Part shown: positions 20,054 through 56,353 of the stretch, in pieces | Layout: each line of letters begins with the position of its first letter | Numbering within the stretch: the first letter of the stretch is position 1 | Virus record (IMG/VR): IMGVR_UViG_3300027899_000001 | Span: 62,001 to 126,000 of that record | Strand: one strand, 5' to 3' | Length of the DNA: 64,000 nucleotides | Made by a program: the position numbers and the translations under genes | Notes under the pieces: generated by a model | The model's input: the letters and a program-made list of their open reading frames with translations, nothing else | The model's database searches: none | Told to the model about the DNA's origin: nothing

Positions 20054-20079
20054 TTTACTTAAAATAAGATTTGGAAATC

Positions 20080-20979
20080 ATGAAAGAATTTAGAAAAACA
20101 GAAAATTGCTCTTTTATTTGCGAAGAATGCGGAAAAATATATGAAACTCTCAATGGATTAAGAGTACATGTTCAGCGTTCTCATACTACTAAGATATATC
20201 ATGATAAATGGTTAAAAGAAGATTTTGAGGGAAAATGTAAAACATGTGGAAACGAAACAAAATTTAAAGGAATATTGTCAGGATATTATAATTGTTGCTC
20301 TAAAAAATGTGTAGACACATATAGATATGAACAGAATAAAAAAACAAATTTAAAATTTTATGGAGTAGAAAATAATTATCAACGCGTAGATGTAAAAGAA
20401 AAAAACAAAAAACTTTGTAAAGAAAGATATGGGCACGAAAATCCTGCTCATGGAACAAACAAAGAAAAGGTTAAAAAAACTATGCTATCGCGATATAACT
20501 CTGAATATGCTTTTCAAAATAAAAATTGTAGAGAAAAATTTGAAAATACTATGTTATTAAAATATGGTCATATTTATCCTTTACAAAATACCGAAATTTT
20601 TATAAAAGCATCTAAAAGTAATATTAATGTAAACTCATTTAAAAATACAGATATATGGTATCAAGGATCCTATGAATTAGATTTTTTAGAAAAATATTAT
20701 AATATATTTCCAGATATTATCAGAGGGCCATCAATAAAATATATTTATAAAAACGAACAAAAAATTTATTATCCAGATTTTTTAATTCCATCATTAAATT
20801 TAATAGTGGAATGTAAAAATTCTTATTTATTAAAAAGAGATACAGAAATATTAAAAGAAAAGAAAAAGGCAATTATAAATAACGGATATAATTATATTAT
20901 AATTGTAAATAAAGATTATTCTGAATTTAATAATTTTTCTATAGATAAATCAGAAAATCCTGCATTTTTTTCTATTTGA
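20080..20979 (+). CDS. Free-standing endonuclease, family copy 2 (inverted orientation; likely start MKEFRK at 20080)
   Basis: CEECGKIY; YGVENNYQ; YQGSYELDFLEKYY...YYPDFLIPSLNLIVECK. Confidence 0.75.
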   Translation: MKEFRKTENCSFICEECGKIYETLNGLRVHVQRSHTTKIYHDKWLKEDFEGKCKTCGNETKFKGILSGYYNCCSKKCVDTYRYEQNKKTNLKFYGVENNYQRVDVKEKNKKLCKERYGHENPAHGTNKEKVKKTMLSRYNSEYAFQNKNCREKFENTMLLKYGHIYPLQNTEIFIKASKSNINVNSFKNTDIWYQGSYELDFLEKYYNIFPDIIRGPSIKYIYKNEQKIYYPDFLIPSLNLIVECKNSYLLKRDTEILKEKKKAIINNGYNYIIIVNKDYSEFNNFSIDKSENPAFFSI

Positions 20980-29667: not shown

Positions 29668-29907
29668 GTCCTTTTTTTGCGATTCTTTGTAAGATTCTTC
29701 TTCTGCTTCATAACACTTCTCACACCTCTTATACGGTTTTCCTGTATTTTGATTATACATAATTTTCCAAGTATGTGGCTGTAAAGGCATATGATTATCT
29801 GGATGTCCGGCATATGTTGTTTGACATTTTTCACAACCTTTGCAATCTGGAAAACTATCAGTAGTCCATGCTATTGCTTCTCCACATTTACATCTTAATG
29901 TTCTCAT
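29662..29907 (-). CDS. Small Cys-rich Zn-finger protein
   Basis: CKCG, CKGCEKC, CEKC. Confidence 0.6.
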   Translation of the reverse strand: MRTLRCKCGEAIAWTTDSFPDCKGCEKCQTTYAGHPDNHMPLQPHTWKIMYNQNTGKPYKRCEKCYEAEEESYKESQKKDS

Positions 29908-30889
29908 ATTTTTTTATTTTTGTATAATCTTTATCAATGATAATTAAATATGTATAGCCTAATGCTTTAGTATATTTTTCTTTTTTCTTATTTTGTTTTT
30001 CAAATCTATTATAATAATATTTACTTTTACATTCAATTATTAGATTTAACGATGGAATATAAAAATCAGGAAAATATATTTTATTTTTATTTTCATATTT
30101 ATATTTGATTGCTGATCCATTTTGTATGTCAGGATATTTATCATAAAATTTTTCTAAAAAATCCAATTCATATGATCCACGATAATAAATATTTGTATTT
30201 TTAAAATTTTTAGCTTTAAGCCCACTTTTTTGTTGTTTTTCAAATATTTCTTTATTTTGCATTGGATTTTCGACATCATATTTTTTTAAACAACTATTTA
30301 TTTTATGAGTTTTAACAACATTTGATGAATTTGGAGATACTGTACCATATTTTTTTAAAGACGTTTCTTGCTTTTTGGTCTTTATTTTTTTATTTTTTAA
30401 AGGATGTTCACCATATAAATTGATCATAATTTCGTTTCCTTTTTCTCTAATTTTTTTATTACTTAATCCCCATTCGCAGCCATAATTTTTAAATGTTGTT
30501 TCTTTTGATTTTTTTCTATTTGTATAATATTCATCATTGTATTTTTGTTTTTTAATTTTTTTAATTTTATTTTTAATTTTTTTTGATTGAAATACATTTT
30601 TAACACCAAATTTTTTAAAAACTTCTTCTTCTGTTCTAATCTGATTCCATTTTTTTTCGCATTCTCCTTTACAACAAGTTTTATATCCTCCTGCTATATT
30701 ATTAAATACGGTTTCTTTATTGCATATTTTGCATAACCCCTCTTCATTTTCACGTATATATTTATCAAAATATTCTTTAGCTTTATGTTTTCTTACTATA
30801 TGATTTATTATACCATGTTTAGAAATAGATGTTAACCCGCATTCTTCACATATAAAAAAATTATTTTGATTTTGTTGAAACCTTTTCAT
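29888..30889 (-). CDS. Free-standing endonuclease, family copy 3
   Basis: CEECGL..H..RKH; KYDVENPMQ; YRGSYELDFLEKFY...YFPDFYIPSLNLIIECK; late promoter at 30901-30914. Confidence 0.75.
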   Translation of the reverse strand: MKRFQQNQNNFFICEECGLTSISKHGIINHIVRKHKAKEYFDKYIRENEEGLCKICNKETVFNNIAGGYKTCCKGECEKKWNQIRTEEEVFKKFGVKNVFQSKKIKNKIKKIKKQKYNDEYYTNRKKSKETTFKNYGCEWGLSNKKIREKGNEIMINLYGEHPLKNKKIKTKKQETSLKKYGTVSPNSSNVVKTHKINSCLKKYDVENPMQNKEIFEKQQKSGLKAKNFKNTNIYYRGSYELDFLEKFYDKYPDIQNGSAIKYKYENKNKIYFPDFYIPSLNLIIECKSKYYYNRFEKQNKKKEKYTKALGYTYLIIIDKDYTKIKKYENIKM

Positions 30890-36131: not shown

Positions 36132-36884
36132 ATGGAAAAGAAATTTAATTATGTTTATTTAACAACAAATCTTGTTAATGGTAATCAATATGTTGGTGAT
36201 CGATCTTGTAATTGTAATCCAGAAAATGATAAATATTTAGGTAGTGGTACATATTATAAAAACGCTGAAAAACTATACGGAAAAGTAAATTTTAATAAAC
36301 AAATACTTGAATGTTTTGATACACGTGAAAAAGCTTTTAATGCTCAAGAAAAATATATTAAACAATATAATACATTAGTTCCAAACGGATATAATATAGA
36401 TCCCGTTGGTGGGCATGGAACTTATGGCGGATATTTGTCTGAAGAAACAAAATTAAAAATAGGTAATTCAAATAAAGGAAAAATCCATACAGAAGAAACA
36501 AAAAATTTATGGAAAAAACAAAGAAAAGGAAAAAATAATGGCATGTATGGTAAAGGTTATTTAATTTCTAAAGAAAAAAATGGAAGATATAATGAACCAG
36601 TATCTTCTAAAACGAAAGAAAAAATAAGTAACTCTAAAAAAGGTAAAAATACATGGATGAAAGGAAAAAATCATTCAATAAAAACAAAAGAACAAATTAG
36701 TAAAACAAAATCAAAATTAAGTTTTGAACAAAAACAAGAAATTTTTAATTCAATTAAAAATCGTAATACTAATCAAACAATAGAAGATATAATAAAAATT
36801 TTAATTATTAAATTTAATGTGTCTAGAAATACTATTTATAGAGCATATAATTATATTTACTCAATTTCTTCATTATCTTCTTGA
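36132..36884 (+). CDS. GIY-YIG homing endonuclease with NUMOD3-like repeats (inverted orientation)
   Basis: YVYLTTNLVNGNQYVG, YLGSG, EKYI, GYN; GKIHTEETK repeats. Confidence 0.85.
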   Translation: MEKKFNYVYLTTNLVNGNQYVGDRSCNCNPENDKYLGSGTYYKNAEKLYGKVNFNKQILECFDTREKAFNAQEKYIKQYNTLVPNGYNIDPVGGHGTYGGYLSEETKLKIGNSNKGKIHTEETKNLWKKQRKGKNNGMYGKGYLISKEKNGRYNEPVSSKTKEKISNSKKGKNTWMKGKNHSIKTKEQISKTKSKLSFEQKQEIFNSIKNRNTNQTIEDIIKILIIKFNVSRNTIYRAYNYIYSISSLSS

Positions 36885-38317
36885 TTATCACTATCAAATA
36901 CATCATTACCATCCCATATTATAATACCCTCTTTATCTTCAGTTATATCACCTGTTTCAAACAGATTAACTATATTTGTTTTATGTCCAATTCCACGAGC
37001 CAATGTAGGATCAGGATATTTGTTAAAGGCTTTTTCTGCTTCTTTTAATTCTTTTTCTTTTTCTTTAAGATCTCTTATTAGCGCTCTTATTGTTGCTGCA
37101 GTTGCAAAAAGTTCATCGGTTGTGAACTTTCTTGATGTCATTCTCTCTAATCGTTCAACTATTTCTTTTTCATAGTTTTTAGCTTTAAACCATTCATCGA
37201 TTTCATTATTTGTTCTAATATTAGTTTTAGTTTTTTCTAATATAAATCCTATAAATAGTTCTTTAGCATAACTAAAGTTTAATTCAAAAGATAATTTATC
37301 TCTTTCGTATAAAGTATTCTTTAGTTTTAATCTAACTACTTGCCATTTGTAATCTTCAAGATATTGCTCAATCGAATCATATGTAAGAACTTGTCCATCT
37401 TTAATGAATACTGGATTTTCAGTTACAATTACTGAAAATGCTTTTTGAACAAATCTTATTACTTCTTCCCAATCTTCCTTTGATCTTCCTATATAAGCAA
37501 TTTCTATATTTACTTTATGTTTAGAATCATCTTTAATTCTTATATTACCCTCAAATTTATTAAAAAGATAATCTAATTTTTTAAGAACGGTATCATATTT
37601 AAGAATTGGAGGAATTTCTTTAACTGTAATTTTTTTATTATCAATAGTTACGTTTGAAGAAATTAACCATGCTTTATCAACGCCTTTATATTTTTCTATA
37701 TTTCCATTAAATCCTTCAAAATAAGGTTTAACACTTTTACGAGTTCCTGCTAAAAAATCTTGAATGTCTTTCAATTTACGAGGAAGTATAGTTGTTTTAT
37801 ATCCAACAGCAATACCTACTATAGGTGTAACTAGACCAAGGGGTATATCCATCCAGAACGGATCGTACGGGCCCTCAGGTTCTCTTGTAGTAAGGTAATT
37901 ATACTTATTAAGGATACCATTAGCTGGACCTGAAAGTCTTACAGATGTGTATCTTGCTGCTGCTGGAGAAGGAGATACCTCAGATCCAAAAAATCCATAT
38001 CCTTCAAGAATTTGTAATGCATTACCAAAAGGTCGAGCTAATTTAGAGATAGCTCCTTCTAAAGATGTATTACCGTGATGATAACCATCTTCTATAGATT
38101 TACCAACAACTGTAAGTGTTTTCTGATATGCACCTGGAGAATTTTTAAGTATGAATCTTTGTACAGGAGTAAGTGCATCATAGAAACTGGGAATGCCCCT
38201 AGCTTCTAAGACATACACAGCATAATCTCTAAACTTACTATCTATAAATTTAGAAATTGGAAGACGTATTATTTTTTCTTTTTGTTTAGGCTTTGTTAGA
38301 TCTCGTTTACTCATCAA
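36857..38317 (-). CDS. gp52: Type II topoisomerase A-type subunit, T4 gp52-like
   Basis: RGIPSFYDALTPVQRFIL, YHHGNTS, AAARYT (catalytic Tyr). Confidence 0.9.
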   Translation of the reverse strand: MMSKRDLTKPKQKEKIIRLPISKFIDSKFRDYAVYVLEARGIPSFYDALTPVQRFILKNSPGAYQKTLTVVGKSIEDGYHHGNTSLEGAISKLARPFGNALQILEGYGFFGSEVSPSPAAARYTSVRLSGPANGILNKYNYLTTREPEGPYDPFWMDIPLGLVTPIVGIAVGYKTTILPRKLKDIQDFLAGTRKSVKPYFEGFNGNIEKYKGVDKAWLISSNVTIDNKKITVKEIPPILKYDTVLKKLDYLFNKFEGNIRIKDDSKHKVNIEIAYIGRSKEDWEEVIRFVQKAFSVIVTENPVFIKDGQVLTYDSIEQYLEDYKWQVVRLKLKNTLYERDKLSFELNFSYAKELFIGFILEKTKTNIRTNNEIDEWFKAKNYEKEIVERLERMTSRKFTTDELFATAATIRALIRDLKEKEKELKEAEKAFNKYPDPTLARGIGHKTNIVNLFETGDITEDKEGIIIWDGNDVFDSDNQEDNEEIE

Positions 38318-46265: not shown

Positions 46266-47228
46266 TTAGCTATTAAGTATAAATTTTGTATAATCTTTAT
46301 CGACAATCATTATATAATTAAAACCTTTAGAAATAGTAGCTTTTTGTTTTGCTTCTATAATTTTTTTATCTTTTTTTATAAGATATGAGTTTTTAATTTC
46401 AATTATAAGATTTAATGAAGGAATATAAAAATCAGGGAAATAAATTTTATTTTTATTATTATATCGATATTTAATCGAGGGCCCGTTTTTTAAATCTGGA
46501 TACATATTTAAAAATTTTTCAAGAAAATCTAATTCGTAAGAACCTCTATAATATATATCAATGTTTAAATATTTATGAGAATAATAAGCGCTTTTTTGTT
46601 GTTTTTCAAATATATTTTTAACTTGCCCAGGATATTCAACACCATATTTTTCTACATATATTTTTTTGATATCTTCTTTTATTTTTTTAGATTGAAATAC
46701 ATTATCTACACCCCATTTTTCTTTACAAGTTTTTTTTACTTTTTCTCTATTTGAATAATATTCATTTCCATATCTTTCTTTTTTTGTTTGTTTTGATTTT
46801 TCTTTTGATTTTTCTAATTGAAATGAATTTTCTACATCATAACGTTCTTTAAGTGTTTTTTTGCAGGTTTCCTGATTCCATCCATTGGGCACACATTTTA
46901 AAGAACAATATTTATTCGGCGCGCCTCTCGTAAAATTTACAGATTTTCCACAAGTTTTACACGTTGGCGTTCCGTATTTTTTAATATAATTTTTCTTTCT
47001 CCATTCTGGTCCTTTATGGCCTACTGCAAAATCATGAAAAATATTATCTCGATATTCGGGCATTTCATCACAATATCCGCATTTGCATTTTGGCGATATT
47101 CCATTTAATACATATTCTATATGATAATTCTTAGAAGATATATGATGGTGTTGTTTTAAATGATTATTAAATTTTCTTAAAGCTAAAAACTCTTCATTAC
47201 AAATTTGACATTTAATGTTTGATTTCAT
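46266..47228 (-). CDS. Free-standing endonuclease, family copy 4
   Basis: CQIC..H...HH; KYGVEYPGQ; YRGSYELDFLEKF...YFPDFYIPSLNLIIEIK; late promoter at 47230-47245. Confidence 0.75.
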   Translation of the reverse strand: MKSNIKCQICNEEFLALRKFNNHLKQHHHISSKNYHIEYVLNGISPKCKCGYCDEMPEYRDNIFHDFAVGHKGPEWRKKNYIKKYGTPTCKTCGKSVNFTRGAPNKYCSLKCVPNGWNQETCKKTLKERYDVENSFQLEKSKEKSKQTKKERYGNEYYSNREKVKKTCKEKWGVDNVFQSKKIKEDIKKIYVEKYGVEYPGQVKNIFEKQQKSAYYSHKYLNIDIYYRGSYELDFLEKFLNMYPDLKNGPSIKYRYNNKNKIYFPDFYIPSLNLIIEIKNSYLIKKDKKIIEAKQKATISKGFNYIMIVDKDYTKFILNS

Positions 47229-47304: not shown

Positions 47305-48141
47305 TTATTGTGTTAAAAAACCTACTTTTTTAGGTACGGGTTTTGCGTGATTATCTGTTCCATAATAATAAATATCTGCAAGAGTCATAGGCTCTGTAAC
47401 ATTAATTTCTTTATGACCAAGTTTAACTAAAAGAGCTTTTGATTTTTCGATTGAAAGTTTTTCAAATTTATAATTCATTAAAAGTCTTCCTTTTCTTGTA
47501 AGAGCTTCATCTATATTCTTAGTTCCTGTGTTAAAGGTTGCTACTATAGAAATATTCAAACAATCTGAAAGTAAACCATCAGTAAGATTAAGAACATTAC
47601 TTACAGCAGAACTTCTTCCCCCATTATTTCTTTTTTCAAGAGCGGGTTCAGCATCTTCAATTATAAGAACTGAATCATTATTTCTCATAAGAAAAGGAAT
47701 AAAGGCTGGATCTGTAATAGAATCAACCATATCAGGAGATATGAAAATGATGTTCTTCTTAAGTTTAGATGTAAGATACCTAATATAAGTAGTATTATGA
47801 CTAATAATATTATTTGTATAATATAATTTATTAGAATCAACATCTAATTCTAAATCATACATATTTTCACGCTCATCTAATTTTATAACTTGTTGAACAT
47901 TTTCATATCCCGTTTTTGTTAAAATTATATCTCCTATTTTTAAGTTTTTTACATATATTTCAACATTATTATTTAATAATACAATGTGATTATCTGCACA
48001 TCTTAATTGATATTTATCTGTTTTTAAAAGATACACATCATATTTAATAGTTTTATGAATAGCATCAATATTAACCCATCCATCCGGAGTTAATACTTCA
48101 TAATCTTCTAATTTTTTAGATTTTATAAATTTTTTATTCAT
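47305..48141 (-). CDS. AAA ATPase C-terminal part, preceded by a 116-aa IntC (split intein)
   Basis: CADNH block B, MYDLEL, IISHN|TTYIRYL; then IIEDAE Walker B, LNLTDG, ALTRKGR. Confidence 0.9.
   Translation of the reverse strand: MNKKFIKSKKLEDYEVLTPDGWVNIDAIHKTIKYDVYLLKTDKYQLRCADNHIVLLNNNVEIYVKNLKIGDIILTKTGYENVQQVIKLDERENMYDLELDVDSNKLYYTNNIISHNTTYIRYLTSKLKKNIIFISPDMVDSITDPAFIPFLMRNNDSVLIIEDAEPALEKRNNGGRSSAVSNVLNLTDGLLSDCLNISIVATFNTGTKNIDEALTRKGRLLMNYKFEKLSIEKSKALLVKLGHKEINVTEPMTLADIYYYGTDNHAKPVPKKVGFLTQ
47794..48141 (-). mobile_element. IntC (116 aa) of an atypically split intein
   Basis: Ends His-Asn before Thr+1. Confidence 0.85.
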
Positions 48142-49039
48142 ATTTTATAAAGTTTATACATTTTAATAAAGTATTTTGATAATTAAATTTATTTAAATCA
48201 TCTTCCCAAATAATTAAAATTTTATATCCAAGAGATTGCAGCATTTCAATTTTAAATTTATCTTTTTGCCATATTTCTTTTGCAGTTAATATTTTAGTTT
48301 TACTTATTGCAATTATAGAATTTTCAAAATAATATTTAGGATTTGCGTGATAAAAATTGCCATTCAATTCTATTATTTTATTTTCATATAAAAGATCAAC
48401 ATAAAATCCTTTATTTTTATTATAACGTATCCATTTTTCTTCTATTCCAAAATAAAGTTTTTTATCTATATTATTTTGTAAATCATTAAAAAATTTTTCG
48501 GATAATTTACTATATCTTCTAAATAAACTGTTTCTTCTTCCTTTACCTCTTTCATGTGATAATATTTTTACTCGTTCCTCTCCAAATTTTTGTGTTAATT
48601 GATCTTTTGTTTTTCCACGAGTTTTATTAATTTCAATTCTTTCACTATCAGATTTTGAATAATATGTATTTTTTCTTTTCTGTAAAATATTATTTTTTTT
48701 CTCTTCAGAAAAATTATCTATAGAAAGTTTAGCCCTAACCCCATCTATCATTTTTTTTATTTCATCTGGATCAGTTATATTCTTTTTTATCCAATATTCT
48801 TTTTCCCATGGCATAAGCATATTTTCATAAGAATCTTTTGATCTTTTTTTTGCATTTTCAGATTGTATTTGTTTAATTTTTTCAATGGCTTCATTTTTAG
48901 AAAACCCGCGTTTAATCCAAAATTCTATGCAAAATCTAGAAGTTTCTTTTCTTTTTTGCAATGCAATATTTTCAGCTTCATTTTCATTGTATCCTTTTTT
49001 TATCCAATATTCTTTATCGTAAATAGTTATTTTTTTCAT
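48134..49039 (-). CDS. Vsr/DUF559-like endonuclease between the split-intein halves of the AAA gene
   Basis: KEYWIKKG repeats; FYVDL..ENKIIELNGNFYHANP...WQKD...IWE; late promoter at 49047-49062. Confidence 0.75.
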   Translation of the reverse strand: MKKITIYDKEYWIKKGYNENEAENIALQKRKETSRFCIEFWIKRGFSKNEAIEKIKQIQSENAKKRSKDSYENMLMPWEKEYWIKKNITDPDEIKKMIDGVRAKLSIDNFSEEKKNNILQKRKNTYYSKSDSERIEINKTRGKTKDQLTQKFGEERVKILSHERGKGRRNSLFRRYSKLSEKFFNDLQNNIDKKLYFGIEEKWIRYNKNKGFYVDLLYENKIIELNGNFYHANPKYYFENSIIAISKTKILTAKEIWQKDKFKIEMLQSLGYKILIIWEDDLNKFNYQNTLLKCINFIKYE

Positions 49040-49091
49040 AAATATTTTTATTTTATATATTCATGATTTTCATTAGCTGGAATACCAAAAA

Positions 49092-50012
49092 CTACATCAA
49101 ATCTGTAATATTTATTTCTTCTATTTTTCCTGTTTTTTTATTACGTATAGTTATTTTAGTATTATAACAAACACACTTACCTGTTCCTGGTTCACCCGGA
49201 AGAATAACGAGATTAGTTTTATCTTTACTATTGAGACCTGTAATTATTTCAGACGATATTTCTTCAAATCCATCATTATAATTTTCTTTTAAGTCTACTT
49301 TTATTTTCTTTACATCGAATCCTATTTTTTCAAATCCATGTTGATTTTTATATACAATATAGATTTTATTCTTTGTGATTTTAGGTTTTTTATGATTTTT
49401 TAATAAACTTAACAGTGTATGAAAAGTAGAATTTTCATTCTTTTCTGCACTTATATCATAATATATTGAGCCTTCATTAATTCCATCAAAAAATAACAAT
49501 AAATCTTTATCAAAGGCAATTAAAAGAGAACTTATTTTAGCTTCATTACTATCTTGAAATGATATCTTAAAAAAGCTATTATCAGGAACATTATAATACT
49601 TAAAAAGATTATTTATAAAATTACTTACATTATAATCTTCGAATCTAAAAATAGCTGGATAAAACCCATTAAGAAGTTGATAACGATATCCAAAATGATT
49701 CGTTTCAGAACAATATGAAAGATATGCTTCATCAGCATCAGCCATTTTTACAAAATCTCCAATAGGATAGAAATTAAGTTTAGGCTTATCTGAAAATTTA
49801 ATAGCTTTTATTTTATTAAAATCTACTGCAATATCTACAGAATCGCTAGTATTTTCTTTAGGTTCAATTTCTTCTCCGAATTCTTCAAATACTGAGTCAT
49901 CTATGTAATTTATATTCATATCTATAGGTTTATAATCTTTTAGTTTTAATTCATCAAAATATTCTTTATTCCAATGTCCATGATCATAGACTTTTATTTT
50001 CCTTCTAGCCAT
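49092..50012 (-). CDS. AAA ATPase N-terminal part ending in a 27-aa IntN
   Basis: ILPGEPGTGK|CVCYNTKITIRNKKTGKIEEINITDLM*. Confidence 0.88.
   Translation of the reverse strand: MARRKIKVYDHGHWNKEYFDELKLKDYKPIDMNINYIDDSVFEEFGEEIEPKENTSDSVDIAVDFNKIKAIKFSDKPKLNFYPIGDFVKMADADEAYLSYCSETNHFGYRYQLLNGFYPAIFRFEDYNVSNFINNLFKYYNVPDNSFFKISFQDSNEAKISSLLIAFDKDLLLFFDGINEGSIYYDISAEKNENSTFHTLLSLLKNHKKPKITKNKIYIVYKNQHGFEKIGFDVKKIKVDLKENYNDGFEEISSEIITGLNSKDKTNLVILPGEPGTGKCVCYNTKITIRNKKTGKIEEINITDLM
49095..49175 (-). mobile_element. IntN (27 aa) of an atypically split intein
   Basis: Cys1 immediately after the Walker A Lys; block A-like CVCYNTKI. Confidence 0.82.
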
Positions 50013-50500
50013 TTTTTTCTTTTTGCCGGTGAATCCCCAAATGCTATTTCAAGAAATCTATCAGCGCTTCTATCATTAATAACTGAGAATAATATCTTAT
50101 TGTTCATTACATTTTCCCAATCTTCTAATGAAAGAGAACCAAGTCCTTTAAGATAATTTACATTTGTTACTTTTGTTTTTTCTATAAATTCTGAATATTC
50201 TTCTAAAGTATAAAAATACTTTCTTTCTTTTCCAACTGTGCAAACTACTAATGGCGTTATTATTCTATAAAGTTTCTTCTTTTCAATTATATGAGGAAAC
50301 CATTTATGAAAGAAACTAATAATAAGAGAACTAATATGCTGTCCATCGCAATTATGTGCTAATATTTTTGTATTTTCATTTAAATAAACATAAAAGGTGT
50401 GACTATCTTTTACTGTTATATCATACATTATTAAATTTTTTCTATATTTTTTAATATTCGCGGGTTGCACTAATTTATATTTTGTTAAATCTATATTCAT
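49994..50500 (-). CDS. Topoisomerase II B-type subunit C-terminal part, preceded by a 50-aa IntC
   Basis: MYDITVKDSHTF...ILAHN|CDGQHISSL...YLKGLGS. Confidence 0.9.
   Translation of the reverse strand: MNIDLTKYKLVQPANIKKYRKNLIMYDITVKDSHTFYVYLNENTKILAHNCDGQHISSLIISFFHKWFPHIIEKKKLYRIITPLVVCTVGKERKYFYTLEEYSEFIEKTKVTNVNYLKGLGSLSLEDWENVMNNKILFSVINDRSADRFLEIAFGDSPAKRKKWLEGK
50351..50500 (-). mobile_element. IntC (50 aa) of a split intein
   Basis: YDI block F; ends His-Asn before Cys+1. Confidence 0.88.
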
Positions 50501-51489
50501 ATTTCTATTATTATATTTCTGTGTTTAATTTCATCTAATATTTGTAATAAATATTCTTCTGTAAGTTTTGTTGATTCCCATATAATTAATATTGCAATAT
50601 TTTTTTTGAATTCATGATTAAATAAATAATTAATTCTATTTTTATCTTTTTCCCAAATTTCATATGCAAATCTTTTCATTATTTTATGAAAATAATCTTT
50701 TGGATAATATTTAGAATTACAGTGCCAATAATCGCCATAAAATTCTATTATGATATTTAAATCCGGTATATAAAAATCTATTGCTCCATTTTTTCCAATT
50801 TCATTTTCATATTTATATTCTTCTACATAATAAATATTACATTTATTAAGAATATCACCAACTATTTTAGATTTAATAGATTTATTAGGCCCAAACGCGG
50901 AATGTTTCTTTTTTCTAAAAATATCATATTTTTCTAGGCCTTCAATTTCTCCATATTTTTCAATATACCATGATAATGTATTAGCTTTAGATATTTTAGC
51001 ATTTCGTTTTTCATATTTTTTAATACCTTCTTCTTTACCATATTTTTTAACATAATTTTCTAAATTAGCTCTCCATGTAAGCTCCCTAAATCCTTTACTT
51101 TTATCATGTTTAACATCAGTAATATTTTTTTTATGTAATAAACTTAAGTATAGAGAATTTGCGCCAATATGTTCAAATCTTTTTTTATCATACGGTTCAT
51201 TAAATATTTTTTGACTAATATTTTCTTTACATTGTAATGTATGACAAAAATATCCATCGTTATAACTTACTTTATACAATTTATTTTTATGATCAATTTC
51301 AAACGTTGGAATAGCATATTTATTGCAAAATCCGCATATTTCTAATTTAAAATTTGGAGTTAAATTTTTATAATATTTTTTAACATACTCATTAAGTAAT
51401 AAGTCGTGCACGCGTTTTACATGGGATCCTATATAAGTTCCATTATTAGTAACCTCTTTTCCGCAAATTAAACATCTAATCTTTTCCAT
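50497..51489 (-). CDS. Vsr/DUF559-like endonuclease between the split-intein halves of the topoisomerase gene
   Basis: CLICG; KKYGKEEG repeats; IDFYIPDLNIIIEFYGDYWHCN...IWE; late promoter at 51502-51517. Confidence 0.75.
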   Translation of the reverse strand: MEKIRCLICGKEVTNNGTYIGSHVKRVHDLLLNEYVKKYYKNLTPNFKLEICGFCNKYAIPTFEIDHKNKLYKVSYNDGYFCHTLQCKENISQKIFNEPYDKKRFEHIGANSLYLSLLHKKNITDVKHDKSKGFRELTWRANLENYVKKYGKEEGIKKYEKRNAKISKANTLSWYIEKYGEIEGLEKYDIFRKKKHSAFGPNKSIKSKIVGDILNKCNIYYVEEYKYENEIGKNGAIDFYIPDLNIIIEFYGDYWHCNSKYYPKDYFHKIMKRFAYEIWEKDKNRINYLFNHEFKKNIAILIIWESTKLTEEYLLQILDEIKHRNIIIEI

Positions 51490-51533
51490 ATGCTTTCCAT
51501 CTTTATTTTATATATTCATGACGGTTTTCATGT

Positions 51534-53267
51534 TTATTCTTTTTTAAGAAGTAAAAAATCAGTTTTTTTCAAATCTTTAGCAAAAATTTCTTGTAATTTT
51601 TCATTTCTACATACTATTAAAATATGATTTTCTGAACAAATTAATTTTTCATTATTAATTTCTATTTCAATATATTTTTCTTTTTTTGTTTTTATTATTT
51701 TTTCGATAGTTTTATATTCATTGGTGTGTGTTAAAATTTCATCATTATAGGTTAAATCTTTAATTTTTTTAAATCCATCTTTTGTAATAATTAAATGGTC
51801 TTCATCAAGACAATCTTCATCTGTAGCAATTATTATTTTGTCATAAACTGGTAATTTATCTTTGCCGGGTTCTATTTCAAGAATGCTCATTATATCTAAC
51901 CATTCAGCATTTCCTGTTAAATCTGATAATTTTCTTGCATTTTTAACCTTTCCTTTAAGAGCATATACTGCGTCAGTTTCAGAATCTCTTGCTTGTTTTA
52001 CTGAACCTGCTGCTGAAAGTCCTTCAGTAATATATATGCATCCCTTGTATTTTGAAGCAGGACTAAATTTATCAGATATCTTTCTTTTCGATTGCTTCTG
52101 AGCCTTTCTAATCTTAACTAAATTTTCATTATGGAGTCTATCTTCTATAGATTTTTCGATGCTTCTTGCTATATCAGATTTACTCAAGAATCTTATTAAC
52201 TTACTATGAAAAGATTCTTTCATCAATTCTTCTATTTCTCCACGACCTGTTGCAAATTTTGTTTTATTTTGGTCTGCAAATCTCATTAATTGCGACGGAA
52301 GATTAAGAGATATAAGAGTTTCATAGAAATGGTGAGCTAAATTATACTTAAAATATTCATTACCCCAATCATTAACTACTTTCTGATGTATTCCTGTACA
52401 GTTAGATCCATTAACAAATGATAAAGAACAAGAATTTTCATATGCTTCCCAAAGATATATTGTCCCCATATTGTTAGTTACAGTTATATGATCTTTAGGA
52501 ATAAAATCTGTCGTTATATCTATATCAAATTGTTTTCCTTCTTTTATAAAATATCCTTTGAAATCTAATTTATTAATAATAGGATCGTTCTTTATTAAGA
52601 AGTATTTGAATGAAAGATAAGTTGTTATTAAATCTATATCCCATTTAAGATCTAGAAATATTTTCTTTGATGGAATAAAGGTTATTTTAGTTCCAAGTTT
52701 ATCTGAAGATTCTTTTTTTCTTATTTCTTCATTTACTACTACGAAATCATCCCATGTAAATTTTACATAATGAGTTTTATTAACAGTAGTTACTGCGAAT
52801 TTCTCAGATAAAATATTAGTTACGGCAGCACCTAAACCAAAAGTTCCAAGTATATTAGTTGATGTATCAGTAAAATTAGAACCTGCGTGAAGTTCTTCAA
52901 GAGCAGTTCTTACTACATTTTTCTTTGTTTTACTATGTTTTTTAGCTGCATCATGAAATCCTAAACCTTCATCTATCACAATTATTTCATTATTATCAAG
53001 ATTAACTTTAACTGTAACATTTTTCATTTTACCCTTACATCGTTTAGCTTCATCTAAAGAATTTTCTAAAATTTCATAAAATAATTGATAAAATCCAGGT
53101 GAATATTTTTTTTCTAATGAAATTAATTTATTATTAATAACAAGCGGATATTTACTATCTTCTATTTCAGATATTTGCCCAACATAAAGAGTAGGCCTTA
53201 ATCGTATAGCGGTAAAATTATCTAACGCTATTATTTCTTTTGAATTTCCTGTATTATTTTTTAACAT
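51534..53267 (-). CDS. Topoisomerase II B-type (gp39/GyrB-like) N-terminal part ending in a 92-aa IntN
   Basis: EILENSLDE, DEGLG, GTFGLGA (GHKL), TEGLSA, ALKGKV, IIIATDED|CLDEDH. Confidence 0.9.
   Translation of the reverse strand: MLKNNTGNSKEIIALDNFTAIRLRPTLYVGQISEIEDSKYPLVINNKLISLEKKYSPGFYQLFYEILENSLDEAKRCKGKMKNVTVKVNLDNNEIIVIDEGLGFHDAAKKHSKTKKNVVRTALEELHAGSNFTDTSTNILGTFGLGAAVTNILSEKFAVTTVNKTHYVKFTWDDFVVVNEEIRKKESSDKLGTKITFIPSKKIFLDLKWDIDLITTYLSFKYFLIKNDPIINKLDFKGYFIKEGKQFDIDITTDFIPKDHITVTNNMGTIYLWEAYENSCSLSFVNGSNCTGIHQKVVNDWGNEYFKYNLAHHFYETLISLNLPSQLMRFADQNKTKFATGRGEIEELMKESFHSKLIRFLSKSDIARSIEKSIEDRLHNENLVKIRKAQKQSKRKISDKFSPASKYKGCIYITEGLSAAGSVKQARDSETDAVYALKGKVKNARKLSDLTGNAEWLDIMSILEIEPGKDKLPVYDKIIIATDEDCLDEDHLIITKDGFKKIKDLTYNDEILTHTNEYKTIEKIIKTKKEKYIEIEINNEKLICSENHILIVCRNEKLQEIFAKDLKKTDFLLLKKE
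51537..51812 (-). mobile_element. IntN (92 aa) of a split intein
   Basis: CLDEDHLI block A; CSENH block B. Confidence 0.88.
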
Positions 53268-54198
53268 AATTTTCTATAAATTCTTTATAGTTTTTATTTA
53301 AGATAAGAATATAATTATATCCTAATTTTTTTGTTGCTTTTTCTTTTTCAAAAATTTCATTTTCATTCATTTTTAAGGTATAAGATCCTTTTATTTCTAT
53401 TACTAAATTTTCAGATGGTAGATAAAAATCAGAATGATATACTCTATTTTTTCCATCAAGGTTATATTTTATAGACGGCCCATTTTGCATATCATTAAAT
53501 AAAGTATAAAAATTTTCTAAAAAGTCAAATTCATATGACGCTTGATACGTTAAATTACTATCTTTATATTGATGTAATAGCATCCTAGTTTTAAATGCTT
53601 TATCATATATTCCTTTATCTTGTAAAGGATTTTCGACTCCATATTTTTTTAAATAATGTTGTTTTAAATTATTTTGAATAATTTTGCTAGAATATGGATT
53701 TTTTGTTCCATAATTTTTTTTACATGTTTTTTCTGCTTTTAATTTAACATCTTTATTAGCTAATGTACATGCAGTTCCATATTTTTTTATATTAGTATTT
53801 TCAAGTTTATCTCTAACTATTTTTGATTTATTTGGATTATCTACTCCATAATTTTCTTTCCACGTTTCTTTCATTTTATTTTTACAATCTTCTCTTTGAA
53901 AATTGTTTTCTACTCCATAAGTGTGTAATAATGTTTCTTTTCGAGTTTCATTTGCAATTTTTATACTATGATTATTACAACAACCTTTAATATATCCATA
54001 AGCTAAACTTTTAAACTTAGTTTGTTTATTACATATTTTACATAATTCTTCGTTATCTTCTTTTAACCATTTATCAAAATATATTTTAGTGTTATCGTGC
54101 TTTCGTTGAATATGTTTACTTAAAGACATTAAATTTTTACATATTTTTTGGCATTCTTCACAAATATAAAAATCATTTTCTTGTTTAAATTTTTTCAT
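53254..54198 (-). CDS. Free-standing endonuclease, family copy 5
   Basis: CEECQK..H..RKH; YGVENNFQ; YQASYEFDFLENFY...YHSDFYLPSENLVIEIK. Confidence 0.75.
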   Translation of the reverse strand: MKKFKQENDFYICEECQKICKNLMSLSKHIQRKHDNTKIYFDKWLKEDNEELCKICNKQTKFKSLAYGYIKGCCNNHSIKIANETRKETLLHTYGVENNFQREDCKNKMKETWKENYGVDNPNKSKIVRDKLENTNIKKYGTACTLANKDVKLKAEKTCKKNYGTKNPYSSKIIQNNLKQHYLKKYGVENPLQDKGIYDKAFKTRMLLHQYKDSNLTYQASYEFDFLENFYTLFNDMQNGPSIKYNLDGKNRVYHSDFYLPSENLVIEIKGSYTLKMNENEIFEKEKATKKLGYNYILILNKNYKEFIENYVKK

Positions 54199-55312: not shown

Positions 55313-56353
55313 TCATATATTTAGAAGTTTATTAAATTGTGCATACTGTTTATCTAAAATTAAAATATAGTTATATCCTTCTTTTTTTACTGCGTATTCT
55401 TTCTCTTTAATTTTTTCATCTTTTTTAAAAAAATAGTTGCTTTTTATTTCTATTATTAAGTTTAAATCGGAAATAAAAAAATCGGGAAAATAAACGTGAT
55501 TATTATTTTCATATACATAATTTATTTTTGGCCCATTTAATATATTAACTTTTTCATAATAATTTTCTAAAAAATCTAATTCATATGTACCTTGATAATT
55601 TAAACTAGTATCTTTATATTGGTTAATTTGTAATCCTGATTTGAACCATTTTAAGCGTATTTCATCACTTTGAAATACATTTTCTACTCCGTATCTTTCT
55701 AAACATGTTTGTTTTATTTTATTTCTTACATCTTTTGATTTAAAGGGTGTATCTGTTCCATAATGTTTTAAACAAGTTTGTCTTGATTTTTCTTTAACAC
55801 TTTTAGACTGTATATGATGTTTATTACCATAACGTATTAACGATGTATTTTCTCCTTTTTCTCTAACTTCTTTATTTTTCCAAGGATGATTTTTGCCATA
55901 TCTTTTTTTATTTGTTTCTTCTGTTTTATTTCTTATTTCTTTTGATTTAAATGGGGTATCAACTCCAAATTTTTTTATACAAGTTTGTTTTGATTTTTCT
56001 CTATTACTATAATTTTCATCGCCGTATTTTTTGTTTTTTGTTTCTTTGCATTTATTTTTTATTAAATCATTCTGAAATACGTTTTCTACTCCATAAATTT
56101 TTAAATTCGTTTCCTTTTTTGTTTTTTCTTTTAATATTTTTAAACATCTTTTGTTTTTACATGTTAATTGATAACCTTTTTGAATAGATATAAATACTGT
56201 TTCTTTTCCACAAATTTTACATATACCATCACTATTATTTTTTATATACTTATCATAATAATGTTTTCCATTATGGCATTTTCTAATATGATGACTAAAA
56301 GATCTCCATGAATATAAAATTTTATTACATTCTTTACATTTAAAGTTTTCCAT
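55313..56353 (-). CDS. Free-standing endonuclease, family copy 6
   Basis: CKEC..HH.RKCH; YGVENVFQ repeats; YQGTYELDFLENYY...YFPDFFISDLNLIIEIK. Confidence 0.75.
   Translation of the reverse strand: MENFKCKECNKILYSWRSFSHHIRKCHNGKHYYDKYIKNNSDGICKICGKETVFISIQKGYQLTCKNKRCLKILKEKTKKETNLKIYGVENVFQNDLIKNKCKETKNKKYGDENYSNREKSKQTCIKKFGVDTPFKSKEIRNKTEETNKKRYGKNHPWKNKEVREKGENTSLIRYGNKHHIQSKSVKEKSRQTCLKHYGTDTPFKSKDVRNKIKQTCLERYGVENVFQSDEIRLKWFKSGLQINQYKDTSLNYQGTYELDFLENYYEKVNILNGPKINYVYENNNHVYFPDFFISDLNLIIEIKSNYFFKKDEKIKEKEYAVKKEGYNYILILDKQYAQFNKLLNI

Follow-up and report, generated by a model that had tools for sequence, protein, structure and literature searches.

Fractured genes were described from ocean metagenomes by Dassa et al. 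2009 (PMC2677866). A host gene is present as two co-oriented pieces that each carry, as a fusion, half of a split intein, and a free-standing GIY-YIG or Vsr-like endonuclease open reading frame (ORF) lies between them. The frames overlap and the loci are mostly from phages. They comprise gp41-1 to gp41-8, NrdJ-1, NrdA-2, IMPDH-1, DnaE, ligase and TerL (PMC2677866). The locus presented here has this arrangement and is not new in kind. It affects the large (GyrB/gp39-like) subunit of a type II topoisomerase (topo II). The locus is located in the window, the whole stretch of 64,000 nucleotides that was analysed, which represents bases 62001-126000 of the 405,016-bp virus record IMGVR_UViG_3300027899_000001. 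Coordinates are window positions unless a contig is named. The locus is very likely a trans-splicing fractured gene, with a split class-1 intein and a free-standing Vsr-like homing endonuclease gene in the topo II large subunit. The support is computational and comprises sequence comparison, predicted structures and phylogeny.

The host protein is new: eight kinds of enzymes for making and repairing DNA are listed for the ocean loci, and topoisomerase or gyrase is nowhere named (PMC2677866). The habitat is freshwater instead of ocean, and empty, contiguous, split with endonuclease and split without endonuclease alleles are all known for one site. A literature search for a natural split intein in a topo II gene found a single precedent, one sentence in a preprint. 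It concerns the metagenomic large subunit Topo2L MGS5, in which a Vsr gene is flanked by Hint and HintC (10.1101/2022.08.31.505936). The MGS5 element is part of ORF1 and upstream of a bypass cassette of the MobA type; its site may or may not coincide with the one in the window. Contiguous GyrB/GyrA inteins are known in bacteria and archaea (PMC4760082). They likewise reside in type IIA topoisomerase subunits, but are contiguous and cellular.

The gene 39/mobA/gene 60 region of phage T4 encodes the same subunit, and its TOPRIM domain is also interrupted by a homing-endonuclease element (10.1101/2022.08.31.505936; PMC11461880). For MobA, the preprint states that insertion is always in Toprim and divides the metal site (10.1101/2022.08.31.505936). 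In an alignment with gp39/gp60, the 50-nt bypass gap of T4 follows ...TDADHDG, three codons downstream of the window intein site. T4 relies on the HNH endonuclease MobA, on ribosome hopping and on extra C- and N-terminal tails through which the chains assemble non-covalently, but has no intein. The window has a Vsr-like endonuclease, no coding gap and intein halves as tails, and covalent rejoining would be expected. Identity with the T4 MobA bypass cassette was ruled out by the Vsr-like enzyme, the lack of a 50-nt gap and the intein-half tails. As judged from sequence, two unrelated endonuclease elements share one conserved stretch as their target and differ in how they are rescued.

Anatomy of the fractured topoisomerase locus

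The virus record originates from a freshwater metagenome, has direct terminal repeats and is rated complete. Its G+C content is about 27%. The genome encodes a T4-type portal protein; together with the size of 405 kb and the terminal repeats, this identifies a jumbo tailed phage distantly related to T4. The same DNA is also present as a 111-kb IMG/VR contig (L001). A megablast search of the locus against 50,697 phage records gave no match, and the Topo2L genes of the nearest named phages are just 26-28% identical.

Three minus-strand ORFs form the locus: 51534..53267 (577 aa), 50497..51489 (330 aa) and 49994..50500 (168 aa). They occupy three different frames, each with its own start codon. 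The initial annotation had proposed a topo II B subunit broken by a split intein at 49994-53267, and these limits are exact, base for base. The first ORF begins with the N-extein of 485 aa (51813..53267), which contains the GHKL ATPase and the transducer and continues into TOPRIM as far as ...ATDED. Pfam detected HATPase_c, then Toprim (residues 411-485) and then Intein_splicing. The Toprim match is truncated and covers profile positions 2-66 of 96. The sequence ...IIIATDED is followed by 92 aa starting with Cys (CLDEDH...LLLKKE). This is the N-terminal intein half (IntN, 51537..51812), with Cys1 and a block B reading C-S-E-N-H; the stop codon is at 51534-51536.

A spacer of 44 nt (51490..51533) separates the IntN stop from the start of the 330-aa free-standing homing endonuclease gene (50497..51489), recognised by profile, fold and conserved residues. 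The endonuclease stop codon overlaps the ATG of the C-terminal intein half by 4 nt (ATGA). This half (IntC, 50 aa, 50351..50500) has block F MYDITVKDSHTF and block G ...LAHN. Its end, ...ILAHN, is followed by CDGQHI. The C-extein of 118 aa plus stop (49994..50350) starts with Cys+1 and provides the remaining TOPRIM (…DGQHI…) and the TOPRIM_C tail (Pfam, 4.7e-11).

The break lies in the DxDxD motif of TOPRIM (…TDED/CDGQHI…), at the codon between the second and the third Asp. The marks of a B-type subunit are present: GHKL ATPase, TOPRIM with EGLSAAG and TDED/CDG, the TOPRIM_C tail and a separate A subunit. The annotated subunit identity holds by the HATPase_c, Toprim and TOPRIM_C domains and the matches to phage Topo2L, and the break inside the motif is borne out by a Toprim profile that stops at 66/96 and by the junction TDED/CDG. 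The small (GyrA/gp52-like) subunit is intact and encoded on the minus strand at 36857..38317 (DNA_topoisoIV, 1.8e-36). In the 405-kb genome, Toprim and DNA_topoisoIV are each represented by a single gene. Topo II activity of the phage would therefore need the fragments rejoined or at least assembled.

Split intein, endonuclease and alleles in relatives

Relatives were collected by a word search with the topo N-fragment, and the best 120 matches were analysed. The majority, 93 of the 120, are intein-free proteins of 597-611 aa with an uninterrupted D-x-D-x-DG. They align gap-free across the junction with the N- and C-extein of the window. The initial annotation had suggested a comparison with such alleles and predicted that splicing restores the motif; the intein-free relatives read TDED-x-DG at the junction and are colinear with both exteins. 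The joined length of 603 aa falls in the observed range of 597-611 aa; it is arithmetic (485+118), and exteins and intein halves were always compared separately. In the nearest relative (P0009, 84% identical) the site is empty, with the sequence TDEDPDGQHI. At the x position, empty alleles have P, A, F, S, E, G, V or N, never C, and Cys is limited there to intein-bearing alleles. The Cys is therefore the +1 nucleophile of the intein and part of the element.

A contiguous insert of 140-152 aa is present at the same codon in four relatives (P0067, P0092, P0043 and P0048). Its termini align with the IntN and IntC of the window, and its short linker corresponds to the point at which the window intein is split. 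Split alleles are represented by about 19 N-fragments and 48 C-fragments with IntC. The order of N-fragment, endonuclease and C-fragment recurs in the separately assembled relatives L009 (a metagenome assembly at NCBI) and L011. The L007/L008 lineage is split at the same place and has no endonuclease gene; its fragments overlap by 8 nt in different frames. Here, the split intein evidently persists without its endonuclease. In this lineage (L007:6001-10041 and L008), intein halves interrupt the AAA ATPase gene as well as the topo gene, and neither pair encloses an endonuclease gene. The N-fragment protein of this lineage (P0008) is recorded on five contigs.

The intein also occurs in a very different host protein. 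In L005:4284-9199 and L006, the B and A parts of a type IIA topoisomerase are fused into one protein (596 + 630 aa), and the exteins are just 31% identical to the window. The L005 IntN is 60% identical to the window IntN and sits in the same motif (GDAD/CDG). This suggests a transfer between very different topo genes. Between the L005 intein halves lies a 390-aa ORF of an unnamed PHROG family that differs from the window endonuclease. A GIY-YIG label for this ORF had been given by eye only and is not claimed, with nothing found by Pfam and an unnamed family in PHROGs.

Two of the contiguous mini-inteins, in P0043 and P0048 (743 aa), lack the block-B His (…SSNS and …SLDN) and the penultimate His (…LSN and …TKN). 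They retain Cys1, the terminal Asn and Cys+1, and their sequences point to either decaying inteins or non-canonical splicers. Relatives also have a second TOPRIM intein site, in the catalytic motif EG/SAAG. This site is split in P0058, P0082 and P0100, split with a 242-aa middle ORF in L014:473-4154 and contiguous in P0092 (L013:3853-4371), where both TOPRIM inteins reside in one 928-aa protein.

The residues for splicing are highly conserved. Cys1 and the block-B residues Ser60 and His63 are present in 19/19 N-fragments. HN/C was found in 47/48 C-fragments of the IntC type and SN/C in one, at 42-83% identity to the window. The lengths of 92 and 50 aa annotated for the two halves, as well as their splicing motifs, were confirmed. 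The best PDB sequence match of IntN is the gp41-1 intein (6QAZ, E 6e-4), a member of the fractured genes of Dassa et al. and the closest solved relative. The HINT fold was modelled on a contiguous relative, whereas the window halves were modelled only as a complex. The contiguous intein (L013:4576-5031) is 54% identical to IntN and matches the AceL NrdHF intein with E 2.5e-6. Its model has a mean predicted local distance difference test (pLDDT) of 86.6. It is similar to AceL NrdHF (6ZGQ, template modelling (TM) score 0.75) and gp41-1 (6QAZ, TMt 0.81). Among 61 matches with E <= 0.001, mostly inteins and other HINT domains, are the Aes123 PolB1 and NrdJ-1 split inteins.

Binding of IntN and IntC is predicted. 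The ipSAE was 0.88 in three runs, compared with 0.01 for the best control, with a contact agreement of at least 94% and a partner pLDDT of at least 83. The halves were modelled with five or six extein residues each. The mark applied for binding was reached by 51/78 solved complexes and by 2/108 mismatched pairs. The predicted binding may reflect likeness to solved split inteins and is not proof.

The 330-aa endonuclease alone had no Pfam match and no single-sequence PDB match. A profile of 39 homologues matches E. coli Vsr (1ODG/1VSR/1CW0) over the catalytic core with an E-value of 3e-4. The AlphaFold model has a pLDDT of 90.9. In Foldseek, Vsr 1CW0 came first (E 5.8e-4, TMt 0.62), and the catalytic domain of I-Bth0305I (3R3P) reached a TMt of 0.58. 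Profile and fold thus agree with the Vsr-like endonuclease originally noted between the intein halves. The protein consists of an N-terminal C2H2-like zinc finger, a helical middle and a C-terminal Vsr-like nuclease of the EDxHD type at about aa 220-330 (50500-50832). Invariant in the 39 sequences are D238, E249, G252, H256 and E305; W255, D282 (at least 90%) and W304 are nearly so. D238, E249, H256 and D282 align with D51, F62, H69 and D97 of Vsr.

By homology and predicted fold, the protein belongs to the Vsr-like (EDxHD) homing endonuclease family (PMC3239194). It shares with I-Bth0305I, the EDxHD family and Vsr the C-terminal Vsr-type core with Asp, Glu, His and Asp. The invariant Glu (E249) at the position of Vsr Phe62 is a trait of the EDxHD family, as noted by Dassa et al. 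In comparison to I-Bth0305I, the window protein has 330 aa with a C2H2-like finger and a helical repeat region, and its gene lies between intein halves instead of in a group I intron. The putative enzyme is 19-22% identical to solved structures and is known here from sequence and model.

Mobility and alternative explanations

The expression of the locus would yield three products: the 577-aa N-fragment, the 330-aa endonuclease and the 168-aa C-fragment. Translation of the last of these is probably coupled to that of the endonuclease via the ATGA overlap. IntN and IntC would associate into a HINT fold, and protein trans-splicing would proceed via Cys1, the block-B Ser-x-x-His, the terminal His-Asn and Cys+1. 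The released intein would leave a 603-aa large subunit reading TDED-C-DG, which would pair with the gp52-like subunit encoded at 36857..38317. In a mixed infection, the endonuclease would cut intein-free alleles near the DxDxD site, and repair would copy the whole element into the cut allele (homing). Candidate targets are the empty alleles of L002, L003 and L004. Splicing, endonuclease activity and targeting of the DxDxD site, and translational coupling are inferred parts of this sequence of events. T4 topoisomerase mutants are DNA-delay mutants and not lethal; the term essential, as first applied to the enzyme, is therefore unproven for the phage topo II. An important part in the initiation of replication is ascribed to topo II in T4 (PMC11461880).

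Support for the trans-splicing fractured gene comes from the anatomy, the colinearity with empty alleles, the conserved splicing and nuclease residues, the predicted folds and binding and the scattered distribution. On the extein tree, calculated from the first 405 extein residues with a quick method, the split state is scattered among empty alleles. No fewer than 15 changes are needed, and well-supported branches force 9 of these. In comparison to L011, the synonymous divergence (dS) is 0.36-0.44 for IntN plus endonuclease and 0.84-1.05 for the exteins. The distribution, the dS contrast and the alleles of L005 and L007/L008 fit repeated homing and loss, as far as sequences can tell. A spliced intein in a frozen relic, with an endonuclease that is inactive or has another role and with vertical inheritance, is the strongest rival, yet unlikely. 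The L007/L008 lineage, which keeps both split genes without any endonuclease, would agree with a relic. Against it stand the invariant catalytic residues of the endonuclease and its ratio of nonsynonymous to synonymous divergence (dN/dS) of 0.165 (versus L011). A relic also does not account for the patchy occurrence among close empty alleles, with the nearest relative P0009 empty at 84% identity, for the dS of IntN and endonuclease below that of the exteins and for the same intein in a 31%-identical host gene.

The intein halves could instead act only as a non-covalent clamp, with fragments that are active without splicing, in the way T4 gp39 and gp60 assemble via added tails. The T4 subunit, split within TOPRIM, functions as separate chains, and tight binding is predicted for the window halves. 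A clamp needs no Cys1, Ser-x-x-His, His-Asn and Cys+1, yet these residues are kept in 19/19 and 47/48 diverged alleles. An unspliced HINT domain of 142 aa would separate the second Asp of the metal site from the third, and the Cys at the x position is exclusive to intein-bearing alleles. Non-covalent function without splicing is improbable.

Still less credit is given to a broken, dead gene with decaying pieces and use of the host gyrase or topo IV. Host enzymes can partly replace the topo II function in some phages, as known from the DNA-delay mutants of T4. Decay is contradicted by the intactness of all three ORFs here and in many relatives, by the intact partner A subunit and by the extein dN/dS of 0.11-0.19 (versus L011). 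Contiguous inteins at the DxDxD site of relatives could point to a single ORF, for a contiguous intein with a nested endonuclease domain, that was broken up by errors of assembly or sequencing, but a stop or frameshift artefact is next to impossible because of the three frames with own start codons, the 44-nt spacer and the ATGA overlap, the identical DNA in L001, the layout repeated in the separately assembled L009 and L011 and the 48 separate C-fragment clusters.

Several points weigh against trans-splicing and homing. Block B, usually T-x-x-H, is present as S-E-N-H, with Ser replacing Thr. Pfam intein models stayed under their gathering cut-offs, with 27.3 versus 35.8 bits for Intein_splicing and 20.9 versus 28.4 bits for Hint_2. 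These scores lower the sequence-model support only, the halves being short, and do not outweigh the rest. The dS values contrasted here come from short segments. The quick tree may be scrambled, also by possible recombination around the homing site. By analogy, the T4 large subunit suggests that a protein split in TOPRIM can work without covalent rejoining. No regulatory signal was found for the endonuclease gene: scans for promoters and terminators at the locus gave counts equal to shuffled sequence, and the predicted folding of the 44-nt spacer does not surpass that of shuffled sequence (z = -0.21), with no hairpin signal. The hairpin control elements of Dassa et al. are thus not supported at this locus. 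A search of sequencing runs yielded one freshwater DNA run, the probable source, and no RNA run. The contigs of the DNA run were fragmentary pieces with no usable variant information.

Neighbouring elements and implications

A second fractured gene, for an AAA/P-loop ATPase, is located directly downstream on the minus strand (47305..50012). It comprises the N-part with a 27-aa IntN (49092..50012), a Vsr-like endonuclease of 301 aa (48134..49039) and a 116-aa IntC with the C-part (47305..48141), all on the minus strand. The break lies in Walker A (GEPGTGK/T), an atypical break point. IntC ends with SHN and is followed by Thr+1. The junction was confirmed by the empty alleles in L011 (442 aa) and L009 (406 aa).

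The block of fractured genes is bracketed by two genes of the DUF7487 family of free-standing nucleases (PD-(D/E)xK type). One (53254..54198, minus strand) overlaps the start of the topo N-fragment by 14 nt, and the second (46266..47228) closes the block. Further copies in the window are at 55313-56353, 20071-20979, 29888-30889 and 10643-11524, and about 14 are present genome-wide. The family combines a zinc finger with a PD-(D/E)xK-like core and has PHROG matches to 'homing endonuclease'.

Outside the window, a third fractured gene encodes an IMPDH/GMP-reductase (L012:1821-4399, equal to genome positions C1:132320-134898). It consists of the N-part with IntN (277 aa), a 343-aa Vsr-like endonuclease and IntC with the C-part (219 aa), and the break divides the Pfam IMPDH profile precisely at position 178. 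The locus resembles the IMPDH-1 locus of Dassa 2009. A ribonucleotide reductase of 1154 aa (L012:8023-11487, equal to C1:138522-141986) has a contiguous intein (about 280 aa; 50 bits for Intein_splicing), in which an HNH-like insert was recognised by eye. The window also has a transfer-messenger RNA (tmRNA)-like gene on the minus strand (244-556) with the tag peptide GENSYALQMAA (ARAGORN). A 754-aa phage protein (11584-13848, minus strand) carries N-terminal ankyrin repeats (Ank_2, 1e-11).

The TOPRIM metal-motif DNA of viral topo II large subunits could be, as a tentative view that stands just short of an even chance, a recurrent landing pad for unrelated homing endonucleases, each differently rescued. 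Examples may be the HNH MobA in T-even phages, the Vsr-like enzyme in the window and the third ORF type in L005. The rescue may be by ribosome hopping and non-covalent tails in T4 and by a split intein in the window. If true, one site would present the whole life cycle of an element in living populations: an empty site, a contiguous mini-intein, a split form with endonuclease and a split form that has lost it. Natural split inteins may originate when an endonuclease invades a mini-intein and is later lost, and this origin would then be directly testable by phylogeny. The ATGA coupling might tie the function of the host gene to the retention of the endonuclease.

The family of gp41-1-like split inteins (92 + 50 aa, Cys1/Cys+1) is a possible source of orthogonal protein-ligation tools, and the atypical split intein of the AAA ATPase (27 + 116 aa, Thr+1) may be a further one. 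Topo II joins, by prediction, the proteins that are made by natural protein trans-splicing. Four allele states at one codon in close relatives offer a natural test bed for the rise and persistence of split inteins. The closeness to the T4 gene 60 bypass links two classic phage oddities, in both of which homing endonucleases target the most conserved stretch of a gene.

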